Made by a program: the position numbers and the translations under genes | The notes under the pieces: generated by a model | What the model was told of the DNA's origin: nothing | Database searches by the model: none | Seen by the model: the letters and a program-made list of their open reading frames with translations, nothing else | In this document: one piece after another, positions 5,775 to 48,532 of the stretch | Layout of the letters: every line of letters begins with the position of its first letter | How positions within the stretch are numbered: the stretch's first letter is position 1 | NCBI RefSeq assembly: GCF_000009045.1 | Contig: NC_000964.3 | Span: 744,001 to 808,000 of the forward strand | DNA length: 64,000 nt | Source: Bacillus subtilis subsp. subtilis str. 168 | Lineage (GTDB): Bacteria > Bacillota > Bacilli > Bacillales > Bacillaceae | Reading direction: 5' to 3'

Positions 5775-6797
5775 ATGACGAAAAAACGGATTACATTTGG
5801 TTTATTAGTTTTAATGGTATGTGTCATCCTGTTTGTTCTGTATGTTCAGTTACGCAATAAAGATAGTATTCCTGTCCAATCTTCCGCCATTCACCCCGAA
5901 GAAGACCGCATCTTTTTTATTTACTCCAATCCTTTCATAAAAGAAAGCGTGCTGCTTTCAACCTCTACAGGCGAACGGTTTAACAGGCGTACGTTTAAGG
6001 TGGCGGATGTGCCTTATATTCAAACGAAATCTTATGCATCAACAGACCTTGTATTATTGGCGGAACACGAGCCTTTTTACTACACGCTGGAGAAGGATGT
6101 GATCAAAGAGCATCCGCTGTCAGATCCATTTGCGTTTTGGTATGAGGGGAAGGATGTCACTATTGAGGCCTATAATGTTGATACGACGGGAAATGAGATC
6201 CACATAAACGACAGAAAAACGAAAAAGGAATATACCCTTACCTTGCCTCCGCTTGTCACAATGGGGGCCAGTGATGAGAACTTTATTTATATCATTCAAA
6301 GCATGTCTATTTACGTGATTGACAGAAAAACAGAGGAAATGATTGAGACCCTGAGCTTAGCCTCATACGCTGATCAATTCGCAGACTCGGAGGAATTTAT
6401 CGTCGCGAGCTCGGATCATAAATTGACTGTGATTGAAAAAGGGACATGGAAGACGACATATATTGCGTATCCTGAAGATCTTGAATATGCAGATACTGTG
6501 TACTATGACAAAGAAAGCGGCAGTTTTTACGTGGCGTACGAGGACAAAGAGGGTGGAGCGAACTTGCTGGAATATGGGGAGGATTTTTCTATTCACACAT
6601 ACAGCTTGAAATTCCCTTATATGGAGGCGAAGTTTAAGGGGAATCTATTGTATATAGTTGCCCAGGAAGAGCATAAAAAGGGCATCGGCGGATACGTGGG
6701 TGTGTTTGATATCCATTCTAAGGAGATGCTTTATCAGTTTGATTTGCCTGAGGAACAGGTGAAGGTTCAGGATTTTGTTGTGGTTGACAATAAGTGA
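5775..6797 (+). CDS. yeeG: Membrane-anchored extracellular protein, beta-rich, unknown function
   Basis: ATG 5775 with AAGGAG SD; KKR followed by one hydrophobic TM segment, then a soluble domain. The ORF-track start at 5403 overlaps yeeF antisense. Confidence 0.8.
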   Translation: MTKKRITFGLLVLMVCVILFVLYVQLRNKDSIPVQSSAIHPEEDRIFFIYSNPFIKESVLLSTSTGERFNRRTFKVADVPYIQTKSYASTDLVLLAEHEPFYYTLEKDVIKEHPLSDPFAFWYEGKDVTIEAYNVDTTGNEIHINDRKTKKEYTLTLPPLVTMGASDENFIYIIQSMSIYVIDRKTEEMIETLSLASYADQFADSEEFIVASSDHKLTVIEKGTWKTTYIAYPEDLEYADTVYYDKESGSFYVAYEDKEGGANLLEYGEDFSIHTYSLKFPYMEAKFKGNLLYIVAQEEHKKGIGGYVGVFDIHSKEMLYQFDLPEEQVKVQDFVVVDNK

Positions 6798-6820
6798 ATA
6801 CTATATGAAATAGAATGACA

Positions 6821-6848
6821 AAGACCCTTGCATAAAGGGTTCTTTTTT
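6821..6848 (+). terminator. Intrinsic terminator after yeeG
   Basis: AGACCCTT/AAGGGTTCT stem followed by a T-run. Confidence 0.7.
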
Positions 6849-6897
6849 ATGAAAAAAACAAATTGACAGGATGAAAAAACAATTTCTTCCTTCTATA

Positions 6898-6926
6898 TTG
6901 TTTTCAAAATTTGGGATTGATAGAAT
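6898..6926 (+). promoter_or_regulatory. SigA-type promoter of rapH
   Basis: TTGTTT-17-TAGAAT with a TG extended -10. Confidence 0.5.
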
Positions 6927-6958
6927 ATGACATATCTCATAGAGAAGGAGGGAAGCCG

Positions 6959-8089
6959 TTGAGTCAAGCCATACCGTCTTCGCGTGTTGGTGTTAAGATT
7001 AATGAATGGTATAAAATGATTCGCCAGTTCAGTGTTCCGGATGCTGAGATTCTGAAAGCGGAGGTTGAGCAGGACATTCAGCAGATGGAAGAAGATCAGG
7101 ATTTACTGATCTATTATTCTCTGATGTGTTTTCGGCACCAGCTGATGCTTGATTATTTGGAGCCGGGAAAAACATACGGGAATCGCCCTACAGTGACAGA
7201 GCTTCTTGAAACGATCGAGACCCCTCAGAAAAAACTCACAGGTCTTTTGAAATACTACTCTTTGTTTTTCCGCGGCATGTATGAATTTGACCAAAAAGAA
7301 TATGTGGAAGCGATCGGATATTATCGCGAGGCGGAGAAAGAACTGCCGTTTGTGTCAGATGATATTGAGAAAGCGGAATTCCATTTTAAAGTGGCAGAAG
7401 CGTATTATCACATGAAGCAAACCCATGTGTCGATGTATCATATTCTTCAAGCCTTGGACATTTATCAAAACCATCCTCTATACAGCATTAGAACGATACA
7501 AAGCTTGTTTGTGATCGCCGGCAACTATGATGATTTCAAACATTATGATAAAGCGCTCCCGCATTTAGAGGCGGCGCTGGAATTGGCAATGGACATTCAA
7601 AATGACAGGTTTATCGCCATTTCTCTATTGAACATTGCAAACAGCTATGACAGATCAGGAGACGATCAGATGGCTGTAGAACATTTCCAAAAAGCGGCGA
7701 AAGTAAGCAGAGAGAAAGTGCCTGATCTGCTTCCGAAAGTCTTGTTTGGATTAAGCTGGACATTATGTAAAGCGGGCCAAACACAGAAGGCGTTTCAGTT
7801 CATAGAGGAAGGATTAGACCATATCACAGCACGTTCTCACAAATTTTATAAAGAATTGTTTCTGTTCTTGCAGGCCGTGTACAAGGAGACTGTTGATGAA
7901 CGAAAAATTCATGATCTTTTAAGCTATTTCGAAAAAAAGAACCTGCACGCTTACATTGAAGCATGTGCCCGGAGTGCTGCCGCTGTTTTTGAAAGCAGCT
8001 GTCACTTTGAACAAGCAGCTGCGTTTTATCGGAAAGTGCTGAAAGCCCAAGAAGATATTCTAAAAGGAGAGTGTTTATATGCCTATTAA
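6959..8089 (+). CDS. rapH: Response regulator aspartate phosphatase RapH (TPR)
   Basis: TTG start after AAGGAGGG; Rap N-terminus (VGVKINEWYKMIRQF, LLIYYSLMCFRHQLMLDY) followed by TPR repeats. Confidence 0.95.
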   Translation: MSQAIPSSRVGVKINEWYKMIRQFSVPDAEILKAEVEQDIQQMEEDQDLLIYYSLMCFRHQLMLDYLEPGKTYGNRPTVTELLETIETPQKKLTGLLKYYSLFFRGMYEFDQKEYVEAIGYYREAEKELPFVSDDIEKAEFHFKVAEAYYHMKQTHVSMYHILQALDIYQNHPLYSIRTIQSLFVIAGNYDDFKHYDKALPHLEAALELAMDIQNDRFIAISLLNIANSYDRSGDDQMAVEHFQKAAKVSREKVPDLLPKVLFGLSWTLCKAGQTQKAFQFIEEGLDHITARSHKFYKELFLFLQAVYKETVDERKIHDLLSYFEKKNLHAYIEACARSAAAVFESSCHFEQAAAFYRKVLKAQEDILKGECLYAY

Positions 8090-8411: not shown

Positions 8412-9131
8412 ATGGGCCGTAAGTGGAACAATATTAAAGAGAAGAAGGCGTCTAAGGACGCAAATACGAGTCGGATTTATGCGAAGTTTGGCCGTGAGAT
8501 TTATGTGGCGGCGAAACAGGGCGAGCCTGATCCGGAATCCAACCAGGCGCTGAAGGTTGTGCTTGAACGTGCGAAGACTTACAGCGTGCCGAAAAACATC
8601 ATTGAACGTGCGATCGAGAAGGCGAAGGGCGGAGCGGAAGAGAATTACGATGAGCTTCGTTATGAGGGCTTCGGGCCGAACGGATCAATGATTATCGTTG
8701 ATGCGCTGACGAATAATGTAAACCGTACGGCGCCGGAAGTGCGTGCGGCGTTCGGGAAAAACGGCGGAAACATGGGTGTGAGCGGATCTGTTGCTTACAT
8801 GTTTGACGCGACGGCTGTAATCGGTGTGGAAGGCAAAACGGCTGACGAAGCGCTTGAAATCCTGATGGAAGCGGATGTTGATGTACGTGACATTTTAGAA
8901 GAGGATGACAGCGCGATCGTGTATGCCGAGCCTGATCAATTCCATGCGGTGCAAGAGGCGTTTAAAAACGCGGGTGTCGAGGAATTTACAGTAGCGGAGC
9001 TGACAATGCTTGCGCAAAGTGAAGTAACGCTTCCGGATGATGCAAAGGAACAGTTTGAAAAATTGATTGATGCATTAGAAGATTTGGAAGATGTTCAGCA
9101 GGTATATCATAACGTTGATTTAGGTGAGTAA
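8412..9131 (+). CDS. yeeI: YebC/PmpR family protein (YebC2, translation/ribosome-stall factor)
   Basis: [10 protein letters not shown]...D..., [23 protein letters not shown] family signatures. Confidence 0.93.
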
Positions 9132-9137
9132 GGAGTG

Positions 9138-9164
9138 AGCAGGCTGTTATGGCCTGCTTTTTTT
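9138..9164 (+). terminator. Intrinsic terminator after yeeI
   Basis: AGCAGGC/GCCTGCT stem followed by a T-run. Confidence 0.75.
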
Positions 9165-9204
9165 GTCCCGGAAATTGTTTTAGCTGTATGTAGGCGGCCG
9201 CCTA

Positions 9205-9232
9205 TACGATCTATAAGATATTCTCATACTCT
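9205..9232 (+). promoter_or_regulatory. Candidate SigK promoter of yeeK
   Basis: tACg-N16-CATActcT matches the mACm-N16-CATAnnnT consensus apart from the -35 flanks. Confidence 0.45.
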
Positions 9233-9264
9233 GGACTGTAACCTATGTGAAGGAGAGAGTAAAT

Positions 9265-9702
9265 ATGACTGATACAAGACATATGTATGGCGGACCTGGT
9301 TTTGGTCATTATCAGGGCTTTGGTATTGGCCACCCGGGCTATGGCATGCAAAGCACAGGCTATCCGGGCTATGGCATGTATGGAGGCCACCCGGGCTATG
9401 GCATGCAAGGCTACCCAGATCACGGCATACATGGAGGAGTCGGCGGCTATCCGGGATATGGTGGGTACGGCGGTTACCCAAGCGGCGGCTATGGAGGCTC
9501 TCCGGGAACTGGAAGCTATCCGAGCATGCACCATGAAAATGATGGCCATCACCACTATTATCACCATCATCATGATGGAAAAGATAATCTTCATCACCAT
9601 CATCACCATGTTGGAAAGGATAATCATCACCACCATCATGATGGTCATTATGGCCACCATCATCACCATATGGGCCACTGGGGAAAAGACGGTTATAAAT
9701 AA
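9265..9702 (+). CDS. yeeK: Spore coat protein YeeK (Gly/Tyr-rich repeats, His-rich C-terminus)
   Basis: ATG 9265 after AAGGAGAG; (G/H/Y)PGYGM repeats and poly-His tracts. Confidence 0.9.
   Translation: MTDTRHMYGGPGFGHYQGFGIGHPGYGMQSTGYPGYGMYGGHPGYGMQGYPDHGIHGGVGGYPGYGGYGGYPSGGYGGSPGTGSYPSMHHENDGHHHYYHHHHDGKDNLHHHHHHVGKDNHHHHHDGHYGHHHHHMGHWGKDGYK
9334..9405 (+). repeat. Coding repeat CCGGGCTATGGCATG x3 (PGYGM)
   Basis: Exact 15-mer at 9334, 9364 and 9391. Confidence 0.9.
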
Positions 9703-9724
9703 AGAAGATGATGATAAAAAGAGG

Positions 9725-9753
9725 ACACTCTTGCAGATCAAGAGTGTTTTTTT
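9725..9753 (+). terminator. Intrinsic terminator after yeeK
   Basis: ACACTCTTG/CAAGAGTGT stem followed by a T-run. Confidence 0.75.
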
Positions 9754-9763
9754 AGCTTTTTTC

Positions 9764-9792
9764 TTGACTGTTCAGTCTGGAAAATGGTAACA
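9764..9792 (+). promoter_or_regulatory. SigA promoter of yezE overlapped by a palindromic operator
   Basis: TTGACT-17-TAACAT with TG extension; GACT-gttc-AGTC palindrome covers the -35. Confidence 0.6.
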
Positions 9793-9816
9793 TTTGTTTC
9801 AGGAGGTGATCATTTT

Positions 9817-10401
9817 TTGGGGAGGAATAAAGAATTTGATACGGCGCTTGTTCTTCACAGGGCGATAGAGGTTTTTGGAGAGTATGGCTACGAAGGAACG
9901 TCTCTTCAGGATCTGCTCTCTCATTTAGGCATTGCGCGCCAAAGTTTGTATGATACGTATGGAACGAAGCGTGATTTGTTTTTGTCCGCTGTGAAATCGT
10001 ATCTTGAAGGGAAAAACGCTGCCGTTATGGAAAGGCTTGAAGCGCCAGGATCTGTAAAGGAAGCCATTCGTGATATTTTTCAGGAGGGTGTCAATGCCCT
10101 GAGGGATCCGGAACGGGCGAAGGCGTGCTACATTATTAACAGCGCGATTGAACAGATCCCGCATGACCCTGAGCTTGCCCGGTATTTTGAAAGACAATCC
10201 AAGCAGCTTGAGGACGCTTTTTATCACGGGCTTTTAAGAGCGAAGGATCAAGGAGAATTGAATGGCGAAGATACTGATATATCTGCGCTTGCTCGGTACC
10301 TGAATCAGAGCAGGCTGTCACTGACATTTATTGCAAAAGTGACGGCAGATATGGATCGGCTTCAGGACCATGTTGACGTGAGTTTATCAGTGCTTGATTA
10401 A
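9817..10401 (+). CDS. yezE: TetR-family transcriptional regulator (NemR/ComR-like)
   Basis: TTG 9817 after AGGAGGTG; HTH FGEYGYEGTSLQDLLSHLGIARQSLYDTYGTKRDLF. Confidence 0.9.
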   Translation: MGRNKEFDTALVLHRAIEVFGEYGYEGTSLQDLLSHLGIARQSLYDTYGTKRDLFLSAVKSYLEGKNAAVMERLEAPGSVKEAIRDIFQEGVNALRDPERAKACYIINSAIEQIPHDPELARYFERQSKQLEDAFYHGLLRAKDQGELNGEDTDISALARYLNQSRLSLTFIAKVTADMDRLQDHVDVSLSVLD

Positions 10402-10436
10402 CATGTGGTAAAGGATTCTTTGCCCATGTATGTACT

Positions 10437-10459
10437 TTTTGGACTGAATAGTCTAGAAA
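10437..10459 (+). repeat. 23-bp direct repeat copy 1 / operator-like palindrome upstream of yesE
   Basis: TTTTGGACTGAATAGTCTAGAAA, identical to 11766-11788. Confidence 0.85.
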
Positions 10460-10479
10460 TAAAAATGAGGTGATGATGA

Positions 10480-10923
10480 ATGTTGATGAATGAGTTTGAA
10501 AAAGCATGTGAAACATTGAGAAAGTTTATGGCTTATATGCTTGAGAAGGACATGAAGAGCTGGACGGAGCTTTGGGATGAGAATGCTGTATTTGAGTTTC
10601 CTTATGCGCCGGAGGGATCACCAAAAAGAATAGAAGGAAAAGCGGCCATTTACGATTATATTAAAGATTATCCTAAGCAGATTCATCTTTCTTCATTTAC
10701 CGCTCCGACAGTGTACCGTTCAGCAGACTCGAATACGGTGATTGCGGAGTTTCAATGTGACGGCCATGTGATTGAGACTGGACTGCCTTATCGCCAAAGC
10801 TATATCAGTGTCATCGAAACGAGAGACGGCCGCATTGTGCGTTATAGGGATTATTGGAATCCGCTTGTTGTAAAAGAGGCCTTTGGAGGATCATTTTTGC
10901 AAACAGAGGAGAGTGGGAAATGA
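10480..10923 (+). CDS. yesE: SnoaL/NTF2-like (PhzA/B-like) protein
   Basis: WTELWDENAVFEFPYAP...EGKAAI...DGRIVRYRDYWNP pattern. Confidence 0.85.
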   Translation: MLMNEFEKACETLRKFMAYMLEKDMKSWTELWDENAVFEFPYAPEGSPKRIEGKAAIYDYIKDYPKQIHLSSFTAPTVYRSADSNTVIAEFQCDGHVIETGLPYRQSYISVIETRDGRIVRYRDYWNPLVVKEAFGGSFLQTEESGK

Positions 10924-11780
10924 TGAAACAGAATCCGATTTTAATCACGGGCGGGACCGGCACAGTCGGCAGCCGAATCGCCAGCCGTTTAATAAAGCTG
11001 GGATACAGAGTGCGTATTGCAAGCCGGAAAAAGGGCGCGCTTGCTGATGCTGAGTATGTGTATTTTAATTGGAAGTACGCCTCCAGTTTTACGCCTGCTC
11101 TGGAACAGGTAAAACAGATCTATCTTGTTGCTCCGGTCGGTGTATTTGATCCGGCTCCCTATGTGCTTCCCTTTTTAAAGGAAGCAAAGCGTCTCGGCGC
11201 AAAGCGGGTAGTGATGCAAAGTGCGTCTGTTGTCTCCGAGAACGGTCCCGTGTTTGGCGCGCTTCACCAGGCAGTGCGCGAGTTTCCAGAATGGACGGTG
11301 CTGCGGCCCTCATACTTTATGCAAAATTTCATCAATGTCCAGCACCGCATGTCTATTCAAACGGAGGGGCGCATCACAACGGCTTCGGGTGAAGGAAAAC
11401 TTGGGTTTATTGACGCTGATGACATCGCAGAAACAGCCGTCAGGGCTTTGATTGATGATGTTCCTCATCAAACACATCATATTCTGACAGGTCCCGAGGC
11501 GCTGAGCTATGCCGAAGCGGCGGAGATCATTGGAGCTGCGGCGGGACGCCGGGTGGAGCATGTCAGCATTTCTCGTTCCGAGCTGCAGCATAAAATGGAG
11601 GCAGGAGGTTTGCCCGCGGATTATGCCCATTTTATGGCGAAGCTTGATGAGGCAATTAGCCATGGTGCGGAACATCGGGTAACGGATACAGTGAAGCGTG
11701 TGACGGGAAAAGAACCTCGTTCGCTGTCAGAGTTTGCGGCTGCTCATGCTGCATATTGGACCTCATTTTGGACTGAATAG
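10920..11780 (+). CDS. yesF: NmrA-like NAD(P)-binding oxidoreductase
   Basis: ILITGGTGTVG Rossmann motif, LRPSYFMQNF, FIDADDIA; ATGA overlap with yesE. Confidence 0.85.
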   Translation: MMKQNPILITGGTGTVGSRIASRLIKLGYRVRIASRKKGALADAEYVYFNWKYASSFTPALEQVKQIYLVAPVGVFDPAPYVLPFLKEAKRLGAKRVVMQSASVVSENGPVFGALHQAVREFPEWTVLRPSYFMQNFINVQHRMSIQTEGRITTASGEGKLGFIDADDIAETAVRALIDDVPHQTHHILTGPEALSYAEAAEIIGAAAGRRVEHVSISRSELQHKMEAGGLPADYAHFMAKLDEAISHGAEHRVTDTVKRVTGKEPRSLSEFAAAHAAYWTSFWTE

Positions 11781-11788
11781 TCTAGAAA
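11766..11788 (+). repeat. 23-bp direct repeat copy 2 at the end of yesF
   Basis: Identical to 10437-10459; encodes the last codons FWTE* of yesF. Confidence 0.85.
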
Positions 11789-11816
11789 GACCTTCGGCGC
11801 TTCCGAAGGTCTTCTT
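11787..11816 (+). terminator. Terminator after yesF
   Basis: AAGACCTTCGG/CCGAAGGTCTT stem followed by a short pyrimidine tail. Confidence 0.7.
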
Positions 11817-11842
11817 ATTGAAAAAGCTAAGTCGTGTTTTAG

Positions 11843-11871
11843 TCATAATCATGCCTCCTGCCTCATACCTA
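11843..11871 (+). promoter_or_regulatory. SigE promoter of cotJ operon
   Basis: TCATAAT-N14-CATACCT matches the SigE consensus; cotJ is a known SigE operon. Confidence 0.75.
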
Positions 11872-11906
11872 TTAAGGTCATTGTTTTTGAGAAAGGAGGA
11901 GCCGGA

Positions 11907-12155
11907 ATGAAGGATATGCAGCCGTTTACGCCTGTCAAATCATATACGCCCTTTCACAGCCGTTTTGATCCCTGTCCGCCCATAGGGAAGAAATATTACA
12001 GAACGCCCCCTAACCTTTATATGACCTTTCAGCCTGAGCACATGGAGCAGTTTTCGCCGATGGAGGCTTTGAGGAAAGGCACCCTTTGGAAGGATCTCTA
12101 TGATTTTTATGAAAACCCTTATCGAGGGGGAGACGCACATGGCAAAAAAGGTTGA
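11907..12155 (+). CDS. cotJA: Spore coat-associated protein CotJA
   Basis: [17 protein letters not shown]-type motif ([17 protein letters not shown]); strong SD. Confidence 0.92.
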
Positions 12156-12402
12156 CGCCGAATATTATCGTCAGCTAGAGCAAATACAGGCTGCTGATTT
12201 TGTGCTTGTTGAGCTGAGTCTTTATTTAAATACACATCCTCATGATGAAGATGCGTTGAAGCAATTCAATCAATATTCCGGCTATTCAAGGCACTTAAAA
12301 AGACAGTTCGAATCCTCTTACGGACCGCTTCTGCAGTTCGGCAACAGCCCCGCGGGCAAGGATTGGGATTGGGGAAAAGGGCCATGGCCGTGGCAAGTAT
12401 AA
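12139..12402 (+). CDS. cotJB: Spore coat protein CotJB
   Basis: ATG 12139 after GAGGGGG; [15 protein letters not shown]...YGPL...WPWQ. Confidence 0.92.
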
Positions 12403-47432: not shown

Positions 47433-47463
47433 AAAAGTCCAGAAAGTGATTTCTGGACTTTTT
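47433..47463. terminator. Bidirectional terminator yetM/yetN
   Basis: AAAAGTCCAGAAA/TTTCTGGACTTTT. Confidence 0.8.
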
Positions 47464-48532
47464 AGTCTTGCTCTGTTTTATTCCTTATCCGCTCAATCAC
47501 CTCATGCAGCCCCTCAGGCTTATAAAACTCCACCGGTGAACTGCCTTTCTCAAACGAAATCGTCTCGGCTTCAATCAGCGCGACATAGCGCCCGTTTACT
47601 TTTGCGAGATGAATAGAATCGCCAAAATCCGCTAGCAATCCCTTAATCTCTGTTTCTCCGACTTTCATTTTCAGCTGGGCCTCTGGCGTGTGCTCGATGA
47701 TTTGGGCGGAGGCTTCGATGACTTGATGGGTGTCGAGGCGCTCTTGGATTTCCCGTTTTTCGCTTGCTTCCCAAATCTCAATGTCGTGCTCGAACTGCTT
47801 GAGTTCTTCGCTGTTGTCTTCAAATGTCTCGTAGACGTGCTCTTGTACCATGTTCATGACCTGATTTTTCATGATTTCTGGCATCGATTCTCCGTACTCG
47901 ACGAATTTCAGAAAGTCCTCAAAATAGCGGGCGTGCGAGGCCTGGTGGATTTTCAGTTCACCTTCCTCGACCATTCCTTCCTCTGGCATGTACGGGTATT
48001 GGATGCTTTTCATGTTTTTTGTCGTGATCGCCATTTCGACTTTTTTAATGAGAGAAGACGCGTCAGAGATGCGGGCGACCTTCGGCTCAAAATCACATTT
48101 CATAATGAAGACAAATGACTCATCAAAGTATTTTCTCGGCACGGCCGAAGCGACGAGAAACACGCCGCCGCGAACCGCGCTTGTGTCAAGGTACGTGCGG
48201 ACGAACTGCTCGCTCAGCTCATTGAAGTCTTCTTTTGTTTCCGCCAGACGCGCGCGGTTGAACATGTTGTAGTTTGGGTTGGAATCGAGCTCGTGGCCGG
48301 GCTCGACGATAAAATGGCCGATTTTCGTCGGCACCTGCTCGGACTGCGGATGGCGGTCGGCTTTCCGTTTAACGATTTTTTTCAGTTCCCCGTCGAGAAA
48401 GTCCTTCAGCTCGCTTTCTTCAAATTCTCCCGTATCAAGGGTCTGGAAGTGCTTGAACTGCTTGTTCGCCTGCTCATCTTTGCCTTCCACCTGTATGACA
48501 TAAAAGGATAAAAACCGAATTTCAAAATCCAT
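47462..48532 (-). CDS. yetN: Conserved acidic protein of unknown function (DUF3900/DUF3898-like)
   Basis: Long ORF, ATG 48532 after AAGGTGA. Confidence 0.82.
   Translation of the reverse strand: MDFEIRFLSFYVIQVEGKDEQANKQFKHFQTLDTGEFEESELKDFLDGELKKIVKRKADRHPQSEQVPTKIGHFIVEPGHELDSNPNYNMFNRARLAETKEDFNELSEQFVRTYLDTSAVRGGVFLVASAVPRKYFDESFVFIMKCDFEPKVARISDASSLIKKVEMAITTKNMKSIQYPYMPEEGMVEEGELKIHQASHARYFEDFLKFVEYGESMPEIMKNQVMNMVQEHVYETFEDNSEELKQFEHDIEIWEASEKREIQERLDTHQVIEASAQIIEHTPEAQLKMKVGETEIKGLLADFGDSIHLAKVNGRYVALIEAETISFEKGSSPVEFYKPEGLHEVIERIRNKTEQD

Follow-up and report, generated by a model that had tools for sequence, protein, structure and literature searches.

The predicted YezE operator of Bacillus subtilis 168: three copies at the yezE-yesEF locus and the recent identity of two of them

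In this study, the yezE-yesE-yesF cassette of Bacillus subtilis subsp. subtilis str. 168 was analysed within a stretch of 64,000 nucleotides (nt) of contig NC_000964.3 (positions 744,001 to 808,000; hereafter the window, whose own numbering is used below). The cassette encodes a TetR-family regulator, YezE, and two further proteins, YesE and YesF, and three palindromic sites accompany it: one over the yezE promoter (site 1), one upstream of yesE (site 2) and one at the end of yesF (site 3). The order across the locus is yeeK, terminator, site 1, yezE, site 2, yesE, yesF, site 3, terminator and cotJA. Sites 2 and 3 are identical over 23 base pairs (bp) and bracket yesE and yesF as an exact direct repeat. 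The best explanation overall, to which we give a probability of roughly 0.72, is that the sites are three copies of one 22-bp operator of YezE, that site 3 is an ancestral copy with an auxiliary or insulating function, and that the exact identity of sites 2 and 3 is recent.

The operator motif and its link to YezE

The palindromes that the original prediction had described at 9764-9779, 10437-10459 and 11766-11788 are present in the sequence in the form given there. Site 1 contains the core TTGACTGTTCAGTCTG at 9764-9779 and lies over the -35 of the yezE promoter, which was read by the promoter scan as -35 TTGACT (9764-9769), an 18-nt spacer and a TG-extended -10 TAACAT (9788-9793). The centre of site 2 is located 32 nt upstream of the yesE ATG. 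Site 3 of strain 168 holds the final four yesF codons (FWTE) together with the TAG stop (11778-11780), and it abuts the yesF terminator, the stem of which spans 11787-11813. The distances between the sites are 676 and 1329 bp. The identity of the last two copies was confirmed, and the repeat is exactly 23 bp, as the adjoining bases differ on both sides; it has this length because the operator itself is 22 bp. When site 1 is widened to 9761-9783, it is identical to the 23-mer of sites 2 and 3 at 17/23 positions (74%) over the full length.

Chance is excluded as the source of the repeat. Exact 23-mer pairs within 2 kilobases (kb) are expected about 1e-4 times genome-wide in uniform sequence, and the 23-mer was unmatched in every shuffle. 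Furthermore, the pattern GACTNNNNAGTCT has four matches in the window against 0.24 expected, a number that 0/100 shuffles reached. The fourth of these matches (47456-47468) was ruled out as a YezE site, with only 7.1 bits in the operator matrix described below. The genome searched is one contig of 4,215,606 bp, within which the window lies, and a 21-mer of the repeat at up to 3 mismatches had no genome-wide copy beyond sites 2 and 3.

The link between the motif and YezE was examined in 80 loci with YezE homologues of 47-95% identity, among them B. spizizenii, B. inaquosorum, B. mojavensis, B. stercoris, many Paenibacillus, Brevibacillus, Thermoactinomyces and Cytobacillus. In these loci, the core GACT-N4-AGTC appears repeatedly at about 50 nt ahead of the start of the yezE homologue and again just past its stop, and about 70 of the 80 loci have the motif in the first position, in the second or in both. 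The association of operator and yezE was seen across Bacillus, Paenibacillus, Brevibacillus, Thermoactinomyces and Cytobacillus. The motif accompanies yezE and the upstream region of yesE in tandem, convergent and permuted gene orders alike; in the convergent loci, the site moves with yesE to its upstream side in 6/8 cases (e.g. L096, L103, L106, L110 and L112). In many loci, two operators stand 23-24 bp apart.

A weight matrix was built from 66 distinct sites beside YezE homologues, all of them from other genera, outside the subtilis clade. The information in this matrix exceeds the core by which the sites had been selected, with TT at -5/-4 and AA at +15/+16, and from these informative flanks it follows that the full element is a 22-bp palindrome, TTyTnGACTRwwYAGTCnRrAA. 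The half-site AGTC is replaceable by GATC or GGTC. Beside YezE homologues of other genera (L041-L084 and others), about 50 primary operator positions hold the hybrid GACT-N4-GATC, which is therefore a legitimate operator form.

A scan of the genome with the motif had been suggested in the original prediction. With the 66-site matrix, sites 1, 3 and 2, in this order, are the three best matches of the whole 4.2 megabases (scores in Table 1), and the fourth match reaches 13.3 bits. The exact-core matrix undervalues the spizizenii-type sites with their GATC half-site, and a relaxed matrix from 168 sites was used as well; it gave 32.7, 31.1 and 30.5 bits for the three sites and 17.6 bits for the next match. 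By this genome-wide ranking, the sequence predicts a regulon confined to this locus, and as a predicted operator site 3 is no worse than site 2. It is highly likely, as far as the motif can tell, that all three sites bind YezE. That YezE represses its own promoter and yesEF, as had been proposed, is very probably correct and is well supported by comparison alone, with the three sites at the head of the genome scan and the motif following yezE and yesE through varied gene orders. Binding and repression are thus what we infer from a motif whose specificity is directly visible in the scan.

Age of site 3 and origin of the exact repeat

By comparing 49 genomes of the genus, ten species were found with the cassette between yeeK and cotJA. 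Site 3 was found in 10/10 of these species, and the TGA stop of yesF lies 7 nt before the 23-mer in all clade species except in this genome. Site 3 is ancestral; in its original state it lay outside the coding sequence, with the yesF stop on one side and the terminator on the other. The variability of its columns was counted over 12 clade sequences, with third codon positions as the neutral reference (400/614 variable, 0.65). In the original prediction, a lack of conservation of the distal copy at synonymous positions in relatives had been named as evidence against it. The site is conserved: 7/22 columns are variable against 400/614 (Fisher p = 0.0024), which is about half of the neutral rate. 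The corresponding counts are 6/22 for site 1, 11/24 for site 2 and 4/7 for the spacer before site 3. The variation within site 3 is mostly central, where the family motif is likewise free, and GATCT stands for AGTCT in 6/12 clade sequences (6/10 species).

Sites after yesF also occur in distant cassettes. In Brevibacillus formosus (L050), with a YesE and a YesF that share only 57-58% identity with the 168 proteins, the yesF stop, the operator and a canonical terminator follow each other in that order. Five other Bacillus species (L008, L009, L011, L127 and L135; YesF 59-60% identical) have two operator-like arms after yesF, which are exact reverse complements and pair into a hairpin of 12-14 bp around a T-rich loop. 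Operator sequence may here have been turned into a terminator, and the hairpin persists in L132 and L014 despite the loss of the genes. The gene downstream of the cassette differs between the lineages that have a site after yesF, and therefore site 3 travels with the cassette. In B. subtilis and B. stercoris, site 3 scores as high as the primary operators (32-33 bits), so that an additional predicted operator of comparable strength (32.0 bits against 31.8 bits for site 2) is present away from the promoters, as is expected of an auxiliary operator. The proposal that the distal copy is a functional operator fits these data, its position and sequence being conserved in the ten clade species and in distant cassettes. 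On balance, we lean slightly towards site 3 being held by selection for a role at the level of DNA.

The overlap of yesF with site 3 is younger than the site. An 8-bp deletion removed the old stop and with it the ancestral yesF end (Table 1), and the frame now continues through TSFWTE to a TAG at the centre of the operator, which is why yesF overlaps site 3 here. The deletion is polymorphic within B. subtilis: other strains have a YesF of 281/282 amino acids ending in YWKH, and the B. subtilis-like metagenome contigs L140, L141 and L142 retain the 8 bp. Two of these contigs could be aligned over the locus, and of them L142 is 97.2% and L140 is 96.7% identical to 168. The earlier statement that the third copy encodes the last yesF codons thus holds for this genome, but only for the 168 lineage, as a product of the deletion. 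In B. inaquosorum, a YesF variant (P0034, 287 amino acids, …YWKPDLILD) has an independent frameshift at its end and likewise runs on into site 3.

Sites 2 and 3 were already about 21/23 identical before B. subtilis arose, and they are unequal in 9/9 other clade species. In all nine, the right half of site 2 reads GGTCT; the B. subtilis sequences (168, L142 and L140) have AGTCT there, with AGAAA behind it. In B. stercoris, site 3 equals site 3 of 168, and site 2 differs from it at 3 positions. The exact identity is recent and specific to B. subtilis, where site 2 gained a G to A change that restored the consensus and one extra A. The two sites of L140 still differ at one position (position 4). 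L142 has the identical pair of sites without the 8-bp deletion, and therefore the deletion happened after the two sites had become identical.

These two changes could also have been copied. Short-patch gene conversion or templated mutation, with site 3 as the template for site 2 in the ancestor of B. subtilis, would make point mutations under selection for the consensus unneeded. In its favour, the two derived changes of site 2, an A in place of G at position 14 and the extra A giving AGAAA, both go toward site 3 and none goes away from it, while the extra A falls outside the informative part of the motif. However, two small changes suffice, of which one restores the consensus AGTC, as selection would explain, and the other is a one-base change of length in a run of A. 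Moreover, L140 is still unlike at position 4, the identity ends exactly at the edges of the operator, and RecA-dependent exchange is known to need far more than the 13 bp of flanking identity available. We regard conversion as possible but doubtful.

The original prediction had also considered the distal copy as a footprint of insertion, with the two 23-bp copies as duplicated target or attachment sites of a yesEF cassette that could excise again. Exact direct repeats bracketing yesE-yesF in a locus that is an indel hotspot would suit such an origin, but several findings in the relatives speak against it. The arrangement yezE-yesE-yesF with a site upstream of yesE is ancestral in Bacillus, Brevibacillus and Paenibacillus, mostly without site 3, and dozens of genomes without site 3 have site 2 as their usual operator ahead of yesE. 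The copies are non-identical in the nine other clade species, their identity having arisen only in B. subtilis. One clean empty site was found, in genome G022 (loci L012/L124), from which yezE-yesEF and every operator copy are gone; yezE is missing as well, no copy of the repeat is left, and the junction lies in the T-tails of the yeeK and yesF terminators. The allele looked for, yezE with a single repeat and the terminator, was seen neither among the 49 genus genomes nor on 4 metagenome contigs, and the deletions that are observed end elsewhere, so that the predicted loss of yesEF by recombination between the repeats found no example. An insertion footprint is thus very improbable indeed.

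Decay of the yezE-yesEF cassette is seen across the genus. G005 (L123) and G010 (L025) keep fragments, and L132 (G063) and L014 (G024) have internal deletions, with unrelated endpoints in these remnants; the B. stercoris representative (L040, D7XPN1) has frameshifts in both yezE and yesF.

Proposed regulation and the role of site 3

We hypothesize that YezE, by occupying site 1 over the -35 of its own promoter, would repress its own synthesis. The -10 of a weak yesE promoter probably falls within site 2, which would in addition stop transcription arriving from yezE. This putative promoter (Table 1) is suggested by the TTTGCCC at its -35, which is invariant in 9/10 species amid an otherwise variable spacer, and by the centre of site 2, where GAAT is fixed in 11/12 sequences while the centre of site 3 varies. 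Release of YezE by a ligand would then switch on yesE (SnoaL-like) and yesF (NmrA-like reductase). The likeliest function of site 3 would be that of an auxiliary operator, which by looping to sites 1 and 2 or by cooperating with them raises the local occupancy by the repressor. Site 3 may instead act as a 3' roadblock and, together with site 1, shield the cassette from outside transcription. More tentatively, this lineage of YezE cassettes, from Bacillus to Brevibacillus, may have such 'bookend' operators at the promoter edge and at the terminator, which would loop the 2-kb cassette or block polymerases from both sides. It would mean that the cassette is a self-insulating, portable detoxification module, an architecture undescribed for TetR-family regulators.

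Several observations weigh against an auxiliary or insulating site 3. No operator was found after yesF in about 35 more distant loci, nor in L145 and L146, and the promoter scan gave no promoter-like site overlapping site 3. The site abuts a highly conserved terminator, so that low divergence of a short 3' region may explain some of its conservation, and the conservation statistics treat related genomes as more independent than they are. The arms of the L008 group form a hairpin, and an RNA or terminator role could account for the retention of the site there. The decay of the cassette in several relatives points to weak selection on the whole unit. Furthermore, no TetR precedent for DNA looping was found in the literature, TetR dimers not being known to loop, and two raw RNA runs had no reads on 9100-12300.

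Part of this evidence would fit a site 3 that binds nothing of consequence and is a relic or hitch-hiker, for instance the leftover arm of an older operator-like terminator hairpin, conserved through its slowly evolving vicinity. The exact reverse complements after yesF in L008, L009, L011, L127 and L135 show what such a hairpin could have been, the adjoining terminator is even more conserved (6/28 columns variable), site 3 overlaps no promoter, most YezE cassettes lack it, and the cassette itself is often lost or broken. A relic would nevertheless not be expected to reach primary-operator scores in both B. subtilis and B. stercoris and to keep a legitimate operator form elsewhere in the clade, nor to have most of its variation in the centre that the motif leaves free, next to a preceding spacer that varies at 4/7 columns. 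In addition, the site is separate from the canonical terminator in the subtilis clade and in Brevibacillus, and spizizenii has lost the RNA hairpin yet keeps the operator form. We consider it unlikely, but well worth keeping in mind, that site 3 is a relic or a part of the terminator. A function as RNA, in which a small hairpin of the 3' untranslated region stabilises the transcript or tunes termination ahead of the terminator, is improbable. The palindrome of 168 does give an 8-bp hairpin immediately ahead of that of the terminator, and the element is a hairpin in the L008 group, but spizizenii-type sequences have the operator form without the hairpin, no Rfam family matched, and an RNA role gives no reason for a match to the 22-bp operator that includes the flanks.

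Two further roles were considered for site 3 and rejected. An antisense promoter would draw on the likeness of its minus strand to the site 1 promoter; this likeness needs the 168-specific deletion and was not reported by the scan. Service to the convergent downstream gene was dismissed, as this gene varies between lineages, without homology. An auxiliary or insulating operator thus remains the reading of site 3 that we prefer, as one part of the overall explanation given at the outset.

Genes of the locus and comparison with known systems

The features of the locus are collected in Table 1.

Table 1. Features of the yezE-yesEF locus in window coordinates; bits are scores of the 66-site matrix.
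Feature	Position	Strand	Description
yeeK	9265-9702		
yeeK terminator	9719..9753	+	left border of the yezE-yesEF block absent from relative G022
Site 1	9762..9783 (22-bp operator)	.	overlaps yezE promoter; 34.5 bits, best match of the genome
yezE	9817..10401	+	TetR-family repressor, 194 amino acids, TTG start
Putative yesE promoter	10420..10449	+	-35 TTGCCC 10420-10425, 18-nt spacer, -10 CTGAAT 10444-10449 inside site 2
Site 2	10437..10459	.	first exact 23-bp copy; operator 10438-10459; 31.8 bits
yesE	10480..10923	+	SnoaL_2/NTF2-like; PF12680 at 2.3e-16
yesF	10920..11780	+	NmrA-like NAD(P)-binding reductase, 286 amino acids in the 168 lineage; PF05368 at 7.1e-14
8-bp deletion junction	11759..11760	+	specific to the 168 lineage; removed the ancestral ...YWKH-TGA yesF end (alignments)
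Site 3	11766..11788	.	second exact 23-bp copy; operator 11767-11788; 32.0 bits
yesF intrinsic terminator	11787..11820	+	11-bp stem (11787-11813), 5-nt loop, T-rich tail

YezE carries the TetR N-terminal helix-turn-helix (PF00440 at 7.8e-11, 42 bits against a cut-off of 24), and the exact protein is found on at least 1000 contigs in public collections. Exact YesF is present in these collections as well, its 286-amino-acid form also on at least 1000 contigs. YesF is close to EasG-type reductases, with 240 bits for the EasG-like TIGR03649, under the cut-off of 256. Publications on yezE are limited to gene lists, which concern CcpA mutants and a heat-induced cluster of yezE-yesF with cotJA-C. The literature contained none that names yesE and yesF together with B. 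subtilis; an earlier, purely computational regulon prediction for YezE may nevertheless exist. In the ribosome profiling (Ribo-seq) run X24, 134 reads fell on 9100-12300, with footprints over the yesE start codon (10461-10492) and almost none on yesF. It follows that yesE is translated at a low level under that condition. The Rfam search over 9500-12100 gave nothing relevant.

On the left side, the yeeK product is rich in Gly, Tyr and His and derives from degenerate 27-36-nt tandem repeats (families D1-D3), the number of which varies among relatives together with the length of the gene; yeeK had no Pfam match. On the right side, cotJA begins at 11907, and the terminator of yesF, almost invariant in the clade, is shared in relatives with a convergent gene of the Amidohydro_2 family. 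In six relatives (window 11816-11840 compared with L034, L035 and L036 at 5950-7940), about 2 kb lie between the yesF terminator and cotJA, holding this convergent gene (327 amino acids) and a second TetR-family gene (TetR_C_8, about 210 amino acids). This piece is absent from 168, B. stercoris and B. spizizenii, and G054 retains only about 0.45 kb of it. The stretch between the yesF terminator and cotJA is a deletion hotspot.

Some consequences reach beyond the locus. A so far uncharacterised regulator of B. subtilis gains a predicted operator and a candidate regulon of one locus, and the laboratory lineage turns out to carry a derived yesF end. Moreover, an eye-catching exact repeat can arise from two operator copies and two small changes, without the involvement of a mobile element. 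The YezE repeats resemble target-site duplications and attachment sites in being exact direct repeats that bracket two genes, but unlike those they are older than their identity, differ in sister species and are probably operator copies, and the empty site of the relative keeps no copy.

YezE had been called NemR-like in the original prediction. This assignment was not upheld, as no NemR model occurs among the NCBIfam matches at E up to 0.001 and the nearest solved structures in the PDB are 2i10 and CifR. The operator does share with the NemR box of E. coli (TAGACC-N4-GGTCTA) a 6-4-6 palindrome and a similar half-site, GACC/GGTC being a minority variant of the YezE half-site. However, the YezE core is GACT-N4-AGTC, and the targets are SnoaL-like and NmrA-like proteins in place of nemA/gloA. 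The closer parallel is with TetR-family repressors such as CifR of Pseudomonas aeruginosa (the nearest named solved relative), QacR and TetR, which like YezE have the PF00440 helix-turn-helix, a palindromic operator over their own -35 and before adjacent targets, and a regulon confined to the local cassette. YezE differs from them in its 22-bp palindrome with a consensus of its own, known here from sequence alone, and in the third operator past the last gene, beside the terminator, for which the literature gave no TetR precedent.

For this extra site, the nearest analogues are the auxiliary operators of lac (O2 inside lacZ), gal (OI) and deo, which are likewise full-strength operators hundreds of bp downstream without promoter overlap. 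Those repressors, however, are bivalent, as tetramers or pairs of dimers, which neither YezE nor TetR proteins are known to be, and the extra site of YezE lies beyond the last gene, at the terminator. Should the 3' operator prove functional, a TetR-type repressor would here use a distal auxiliary operator, something rarely seen. In its core, the YezE system is an ordinary pair of TetR repressor and operator, and the operator on the terminator side at the 3' end is its only unusual feature.

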